Below are positions 20,284 to 20,352 of a DNA stretch of 64,000 bases, one piece after another (position 1 is the stretch's first letter; each line of letters begins with the position of its first letter). The notes below the pieces were generated by a model, which saw only the letters and a program-made list of their open reading frames with translations, was not told the DNA's origin and made no database searches. The position numbers were made by a program, and so were the translations under genes. The stretch lies in assembly GCF_000143415.4 (NCBI RefSeq), contig NW_003314355.1, forward strand, positions 143,410 to 207,409. Reading direction: 5' to 3'. Source of the DNA: Selaginella moellendorffii (lineage: Eukaryota > Plantae > Lycopodiophyta).

Positions 20284-20352
20284 GGGTGAAAGCCCAAAGC
20301 GTTCGTCTCCCAGACCCTGGAGGGTTTGGTGAGCTCCAAAAGTATAGTAGGG
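20284..20352 (+). promoter_or_regulatory. Pol I promoter-like cassette in LTR (also 26082-26150, 59435-59503, and 27784-27852 on minus)
   Basis: 19/19 and 17/17 identical blocks to the rDNA promoter at 16557-16626, with the same spacing. Confidence 0.78.

Follow-up and report, generated by a model that had tools for sequence, protein, structure and literature searches.

The 64,000-nucleotide stretch of the Selaginella moellendorffii genome analyzed in this study, hereafter the window, carries two 35S ribosomal DNA (rDNA) units, both assigned to the minus strand by Rfam, and one family of long terminal repeat (LTR) elements, for which self-comparison and the junction sequences revealed four insertions, namely a full-length copy, a truncated copy, a solo LTR, and an LTR fragment. 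The analysis concerns a 69-bp cassette in the LTR of this element, which is very likely a true copy of the rDNA core promoter for RNA polymerase I (Pol I). The cassette, the rDNA promoters with which it was compared, and the associated 18S genes are as follows.

20284..20352, plus strand: cassette in the 5' LTR, putative core-promoter copy derived from rDNA (-65 to +4; predicted +1 = A20349), identified by block matches and local alignment
16557..16626, minus strand: gene promoter of unit A (-66 to +4; predicted +1 = A16560), about 2.0 kb upstream of 18S
57717..57785, minus strand: gene promoter of unit B (predicted +1 = A57720), identified by block matches
29486..29553, minus strand: candidate spacer-promoter copy SP2 (blocks 18/19, 8/9, and 14/17), with inter-block sequence unrelated to the gene promoter
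29724..29787 (approximate), minus strand: candidate spacer-promoter copy SP1, more decayed than SP2, situated about 100 bp past the 25S 3' end and 240 bp upstream of SP2
12749..14558, minus strand: 18S of unit A (Rfam)
53884..55693, minus strand: 18S of unit B (Rfam)

In the preliminary description of this locus, three blocks of 19, 9, and 17 bp were reported to be shared by the LTR and the rDNA promoter, and all three were reproduced exactly in our comparison, on the plus strand at 20284-20302 (19/19), 20305-20313 (9/9), and 20336-20352 (17/17). The same blocks were found as reverse complements at 16557-16626 and 57717-57785 because the rDNA lies on the minus strand, and the span of the cassette was nearly constant among the LTR (69 bp), unit A (70 bp), and unit B (69 bp), the difference being a single G in a G run. 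When up to three mismatches were allowed, blocks 1 and 3 each gave seven matches, versus 0.02 and 0.10, respectively, expected from shuffled sequences, and the seven places turned out to be the two gene promoters, four LTR copies, and one spacer promoter. As judged by these counts, the similarity of the blocks to the rDNA promoter is beyond chance. All three blocks were present in the four LTR copies (5', 3', truncated, and solo), which represent two subfamilies, with a C to T substitution in the truncated copy as the sole change.

Local alignment of the LTR with the gene promoter yielded exactly 70 columns, 56 of them identical, with nothing aligned past either end. Its limits are the first G of block 1 and the GGG following the initiator A, that is, exactly -65 and +4 relative to the A of TATAGTA-GGG, and it thereby bore out the earlier proposal of an rDNA core-promoter copy lying in sense orientation within the LTR. 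While the blocks were identical at 45 of 45 positions, the 22-24 nt between them were unrelated, and the 25 inter-block columns contained all 14 mismatches (for this partition, chosen post hoc, the chance is about 2e-8). The cassette lies in the sense orientation of the LTR in all copies, occupying LTR positions 847-915 of 1839, and starts 11 bp past a minisatellite, an arrangement reminiscent of rDNA spacer repeats with a promoter behind them. The 1839-bp LTR has no TATA tetranucleotide besides that of the cassette, nor does it contain AATAAA or ATTAAA. The string TATAGTAGGG, which the LTR copies share exactly with both rDNA units, fits the plant Pol I initiator consensus TATA(G/T)TA(+1)GGG.

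The value of this comparison depends on whether the rDNA stretch is the real promoter, and three kinds of evidence supported that it is. In both units, TATAGTAGGG lies 2.0 kb upstream of 18S, and it is letter-for-letter the published start-site sequence of rDNA in the grass Avena (PMC5407837), in agreement with its earlier identification as a plant Pol I initiation motif. In addition, SP1 and SP2 constitute diverged tandem copies of the gene promoter with a 240-bp period, located 100-400 bp after the 25S 3' end, and are candidate spacer promoters by their sequence. Spacer promoters are usual in plant rDNA. Since SP2 keeps the blocks while its inter-block sequence is unrelated to that of the gene promoter, the three blocks appear to be the constrained elements. 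Furthermore, the word content of a 1202-base stretch centered on the motif (57124-58325) was queried against public sequencing runs. DNA-like runs contained 0.91 of the sampled words, and 14 RNA-type runs from seven studies contained 0.48-0.55, with 12 of the 14 at 0.48-0.49. The share expected if the RNA begins at A57720 is 0.484, and although a word share is no positional map, these values agree closely with a start of the pre-rRNA at the motif. A start of the pre-rRNA elsewhere, which had been named beforehand as a result that would overturn the proposal, was thus not indicated, as the RNA-type runs contained nearly exactly the half downstream of the motif. The same share of about half implied that these RNA-type runs are free of rDNA spacer DNA.

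The cassette-bearing element itself was delimited as follows, the full-length copy spanning 19438-27074 on the plus strand (7.6 kb).

19433..19437, plus strand: left target-site duplication (TSD) CCCGT of the full-length element, with the identical 5 bp at 27075-27079
19438..21276, plus strand: 5' LTR, 1839 bp, with TG..CA ends (self-comparison and junctions)
19670..20272, plus strand: minisatellite in U3, with a 12-nt unit GTCCGAGATGGA grading into GAGTCC hexamers
21280..21291, plus strand: primer-binding site TGGTATCGGAGC, 3 nt past the 5' LTR
21277..25129, plus strand: non-coding internal region, 3.85 kb (open reading frames, Pfam, and tRNA search)
25118..25128, plus strand: polypurine tract GGGTGGTGGAG (junction sequence)
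25130..27074, plus strand: 3' LTR, 1945 bp, with the cassette at 26082-26150
27075..28499, minus strand: older truncated copy, first 1425 bp of the LTR, with the cassette at 27784-27852
19147..19437, minus strand: older truncated copy, LTR end and 70 nt of interior including the primer-binding site (19147-19438 matches 21346-21055 inverted, 94.9%)
58420..60428, plus strand: solo LTR in the spacer of unit B, with the TSD GCCAC and the cassette at 59435-59503
38606..38901, plus strand: last 296 bp of an LTR within an rDNA long interspersed nuclear element (LINE), with the left edge at a microhomology GAGAGCCAA with the LINE and the right edge at the true LTR end

Both LTRs of the full-length copy end in TGTGAG...TTACA and are 98-100% identical outside the minisatellite, which measures 600-850 bp among the LTRs and is longer in the 3' LTR than in the 5' LTR. 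The primer-binding site TGGTATCGGAGC presumably corresponds to the usual plant initiator-tRNA-Met site, to which we take it to match at 11 of 12 positions. With its paired TG..CA LTRs, 5-bp TSDs, primer-binding site, and polypurine tract, the element has the hallmarks of an LTR retrotransposon, and its interior of several kb shows no gag/pol coding capacity. As had been described before, the element proved to be non-coding: no open reading frame (ORF) longer than 94 amino acids was found in the 3.85-kb interior, eight ORFs gave no Pfam match, and ARAGORN found no tRNA there. By these sequence features it is a large non-autonomous LTR retrotransposon of the large retrotransposon derivative (LARD) type, rather than a miniature element, because its interior of 3.85 kb is non-coding and its total length reaches 7.6 kb. 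Membership among the TRIMs (terminal-repeat retrotransposons in miniature), including Cassandra, was rejected on the basis of size, as the element measures 7.6 kb and its LTRs 1839 and 1945 bp, versus less than about 1.3 kb with LTRs of 100-350 bp; moreover, Rfam detected neither 5S nor tRNA sequence in the LTRs, which thus lack a Pol III promoter of the Cassandra type.

The insertion target of the full-length element was an older, truncated minus-strand copy of the same family, whose sequence runs from 28499 down to 27075 and then from 19437 down to 19147. The solo LTR lies 700 bp upstream of the gene promoter of unit B, and the corresponding empty site is kept in unit A at 17256-17260. As for the fragment, comparison of 38606-38619 with 50033-50046 revealed that it is joined to the rDNA LINE by a microhomology of 9-12 bp, with 274 bp of the LINE replaced, a pattern suggestive of insertion and subsequent microhomology-mediated deletion. 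The four insertion contexts given in the preliminary description (intergenic spacer twice, the element's own LTR, and an rDNA LINE) were accordingly found as described, and all four do lie in rDNA. Their further interpretation as a possible adaptation to the nucleolus or a preference for rDNA was not supported, since such locations are expected in a window that is itself rDNA; for the same reason, rDNA-specific insertion was rejected as a reading of the four copies, being a sampling effect.

Apart from the cassette, the only further matches to rDNA within the element were low-complexity ones of the GAGTCC type. A GAGTCC-type stretch in the 5' external spacer (16479-16521, minus strand; +39 to +81) is 84-86% alike over 43 nt to the LTR minisatellite, and a 21-nt match to the 12-nt minisatellite unit, in inverted orientation, lies just upstream of SP2 at 29582-29602. 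A common origin of these stretches and the minisatellite is uncertain because GAGTCC-type sequence is of low complexity.

Several further observations concern the interior. A contig of one sequencing run (X1; depth 50) links the LTR end at 21277 straight to 23323, omitting 2045 bases that include the primer-binding site, and the sequence at 23324 (TGGCACGTCCGGGG) resembles a second, different primer-binding site. On account of this skipped segment and the second primer-binding-like sequence, the full-length copy may have a composite interior, or a derivative with this deletion may be common. The interior also contains, at 23569-23628, a tandem pair of 28-nt units with GGTTCGAGTCCC, a motif resembling a tRNA T-arm, where ARAGORN finds no tRNA.

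On the basis of the sequence relationships described above, we propose that a 7.6-kb LARD captured the 69-bp core promoter (-65 to +4 around TATAGTA(+1)GGG) from the 35S rDNA of its host, and that the cassette, situated in mid-LTR and in the sense orientation, would serve as the element's own promoter by recruiting Pol I initiation factors. Initiation at A20349 would divide the LTR into a U3 of 910 nt and an R-U5 of 928 nt and would give rise to a long uncapped RNA. Because the element is non-coding and its proteins would be supplied in trans, translation would be unneeded and such an uncapped RNA would suffice, to be reverse-transcribed in trans by an autonomous partner. Of the single mechanisms weighed here, the one rated highest is that Pol I uses the cassette to make the transposition template, to which we assign a probability of roughly 40%. 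The broader proposal, namely a class of Pol I-using LTR retrotransposons whose RNA starts at A20349 and is reverse-transcribed in trans by an autonomous partner as a Pol I counterpart of Cassandra, is advanced somewhat more tentatively.

Several properties of the element make this reading coherent. The cassette contains the sole TATA of the LTR. Transcription by plant Pol II in plant extracts fell to less than 5% when the TATA box had a G in fifth position (PMC10005294, table 5), and the motif of the cassette, which has a G at this position, is thus a poor Pol II box. The element is non-coding, as noted above. Furthermore, LTR elements with a Pol III promoter are limited to about 1.3 kb or less (PMC10886601), whereas Pol I, unlike Pol III, is processive enough for 7.6 kb.

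Other observations weigh against transcription of the element by Pol I. Three raw RNA-seq runs, from each of which 9.2 million reads were sampled, were mapped at 90% likeness on 20240-25340, a stretch that includes the last 33 bp of the minisatellite and excludes the rRNA genes, 5S, and the rDNA start site. The element was nearly silent in the three runs: only 25 of 27.6 million reads (7, 10, and 8 per run) mapped to this stretch, on both strands and at a depth below 2.5, and no pile-up of read starts or ends was observed on it, none being located at the predicted +1 (20349). The claim in the preliminary description that the element is transcribed by Pol I therefore obtained no backing from these reads. 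Since the libraries (cDNA) were probably poly(A)-selected and such selection under-represents Pol I products, this near silence is a weak test that amounts to an absence of support. Comparison of two LTR subfamilies further revealed that 20244-20640 and the start of U3 are 94-100% alike and that only 20640-21090 diverges (74-92%), so that the cassette forms no peak of conservation relative to its flanking 400 bp, the U3 start, or the remainder of the 5' two-thirds of the LTR. The cassette being conserved only equally to its surroundings, selection on it inside the element was not demonstrated in the window. In addition, nothing resembling a Pol I terminator was matched between the LTR and the 3' external spacer, the contrast between identical blocks and unrelated inter-block sequence could come from the capture of a promoter variant absent from the window, and a nucleolar Pol I transcript would still need to reach the particles in which reverse transcription takes place.

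Some transcription of family members is likely, because 5-20% of the words of 20284-22400 occur in several RNA-type runs, three of which belong to those free of rDNA spacer DNA. A 2580-nt contig of run X1, which starts at 20244, upstream of the predicted +1, was also considered. This contig comprises the LTR from 20244 to its end, joined to the interior with the 2045-base deletion mentioned above, and was rejected as start-site evidence, since the minisatellite interrupts contigs, the 5' and 3' LTRs are merged in them, and the RNA or DNA nature of the run is a guess.

With respect to the origin of the cassette, sequence evidence points to transfer from the rDNA into the LTR, because the initiator conforms to that of plant Pol I in general, because the rDNA possesses internal paralogs with longer homology, and because the rDNA copies are flanked by no other LTR sequence. 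In particular, both units and the two spacer paralogs SP1 and SP2 share homology past +4 into the transcribed spacer, whereas the LTR copy stops at +4; as its homology ends exactly at -65 and +4, only the promoter and no transcribed spacer would have been taken. These features make it extremely improbable that the rDNA promoter is conversely the remnant of an old LTR insertion, despite the shared sequence and the abundance of insertions in the rDNA units here. A less easily dismissed explanation, which we rate only somewhat below use of the cassette by Pol I, is that recombination or template switching in or near rDNA introduced the cassette into an ancestral LTR and that it has since been carried along without function, in which case the identity of the blocks would reflect selection in the donor rDNA variant and not in the element. 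Such a history would accord with the near silence of the element in RNA-seq, with a conservation of the cassette within the family that does not exceed that of the surrounding LTR, and with the location of all copies in the window within rDNA, where exchange is easy; a recent review likewise holds that most rDNA modules in transposons are probably without benefit (PMC10946416). It does not readily account for limits that coincide with those of a core promoter, for the sense orientation in all copies, or for the placement of the sole TATA of the LTR where U3 meets R, and it requires, in order to explain 45 of 45 identical block positions around 22-24 unrelated nucleotides, a donor variant that is absent among the promoters of the window.

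If instead the cassette does act as a promoter, the polymerase involved might be Pol II, with the cassette providing a TATA-like box and upstream elements for a start 25-35 nt downstream (about 20373-20380). The TATA-binding protein TBP is common to all three polymerases, and LTR elements normally use Pol II; the cassette offers the only TATA of the LTR, a few reads were present in cDNA libraries, and parts of the stretch were found in several RNA-type runs. We consider this improbable, however, since the G at TATA position 5 is poorly compatible with plant Pol II as described above, since the LTR is devoid of a poly(A) signal motif, and since the rDNA identity of the upstream blocks at -65 and -45 would be left unexplained. 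Lower still in our estimation stands a role of the cassette as a factor-binding site without start function, through which bound Pol I factors would direct either the copies or the machinery for integration toward the nucleolus or rDNA, or would shield the copies from silencing. The conserved blocks, the location of all window copies in rDNA, and the lack of transcripts starting at the cassette would be compatible with such a role, but the rDNA location is the sampling effect noted above, no other promoter was recognizable in the LTR, and no precedent was found. Transcription by Pol I remains the reading that we prefer.

Besides the element, the rDNA of the window displays several features of its own. 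A minus-strand 5S rRNA gene in the spacer of unit A (18790-18908) shares the strand of the 35S unit, a linked arrangement, and is the sole 5S gene detected by Rfam in the window. At 17480-18260, the 16-bp unit GGCCCCGGACATGTCC, a spacer subrepeat with the perfect palindrome GGACATGTCC as its core, recurs about 48 times, and related arrays are present also in unit B at 60619-62073. In addition, 1894-5751 and 7131-10988 form a 3.86-kb direct repeat pair with 99.7% identity that adjoins a broken 25S gene; the preliminary description entered this pair separately, as Penelope-like elements.

If the cassette works, 69 bp would be enough to recruit Pol I outside rDNA, and the element would provide a natural definition of the plant core promoter as three blocks at fixed spacing. 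It would also raise the issue of how a nucleolar, uncapped RNA enters reverse transcription, and would imply that Pol I promoters are scattered through the genome, with possible effects on rDNA regulation. Even if it is only a passenger, the cassette would still be a clean marker of sequence exchange between rDNA and a resident element.

Searching the literature for LTRs equipped with a promoter of Pol I or 35S type, we found no published case, nor any report of an element carrying its own Pol I promoter; mobile elements are known to borrow Pol III promoters, as do short interspersed nuclear elements (SINEs) and Cassandra, or ride on Pol I transcripts, as do R1 and R2. In the table of rDNA-derived transposon sequences given by a 2024 review, 5S promoters are entered for SINEs, Cassandra, and Ajax, SINE28 appears with a 28S piece and Pokey with spacer repeats, and no 35S/45S promoter is included (PMC10946416). 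The non-LTR elements R1 and R2, which reside in 28S genes, resemble the present element in that their RNA depends on Pol I, but they lack an own promoter and are transcribed only together with the pre-rRNA, whereas the promoter copy of the spikemoss element would be portable. The rDNA-resident Pokey of Daphnia similarly carries repeats derived from the intergenic spacer, upstream of its gene, and these repeats evolve in concert with rDNA (PMC3849761). Pokey is, however, a DNA transposon of the piggyBac type, and what it has copied is a spacer repeat of 200 bp whose role is unknown, rather than the mapped core promoter, the start site in Daphnia being unknown (PMC3849761).

The rDNA spacer promoters are likewise duplicated copies of the gene promoter, and SP1 and SP2 show the same three blocks as the LTR; they are, however, part of the rDNA unit with homology past +4, whereas the LTR copy is mobile and stops at +4. 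With LARDs the spikemoss element shares long LTRs, a non-coding interior of several kb, and the requirement for mobilization in trans. To our knowledge, the LARDs described so far have ordinary LTR promoters. None with an rDNA promoter appears in the table of rDNA-derived transposon sequences cited above (PMC10946416).

The closest parallel is offered by the Pol III-driven elements Cassandra, Helenus, and Ajax (TRIMp3), which are likewise non-coding LTR elements with 5-bp TSDs and an LTR promoter copied from a host RNA gene (5S or tRNA), thought to produce the template RNA (PMC10886601, PMC10946416). Cassandra is thus a Pol III precedent, as the preliminary description had pointed out, and its comparison of the two elements is apt in principle; as a statement of family membership it fails, since the spikemoss element contains no 5S or tRNA piece, is of the wrong size, and has a putative promoter that is external rather than internal. 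In the Cassandra-type elements the promoter is internal and the gene-like part is itself transcribed, whereas the cassette represents a copy of an upstream Pol I promoter ending at +4, and their size of 0.3-1.3 kb, the limit of which has been ascribed to Pol III, contrasts with the 7.6 kb and the LTRs of 1.8-1.9 kb observed here. Transcription from the 5S part of Cassandra has been validated, and promoter changes in its host gene have been shown across species to recur in its LTR; the cassette is known from sequence comparison. If the proposed mechanism is true, the spikemoss element would be the Pol I counterpart of Cassandra, released from the size limit set by Pol III, and would constitute a natural, movable Pol I promoter outside rDNA.
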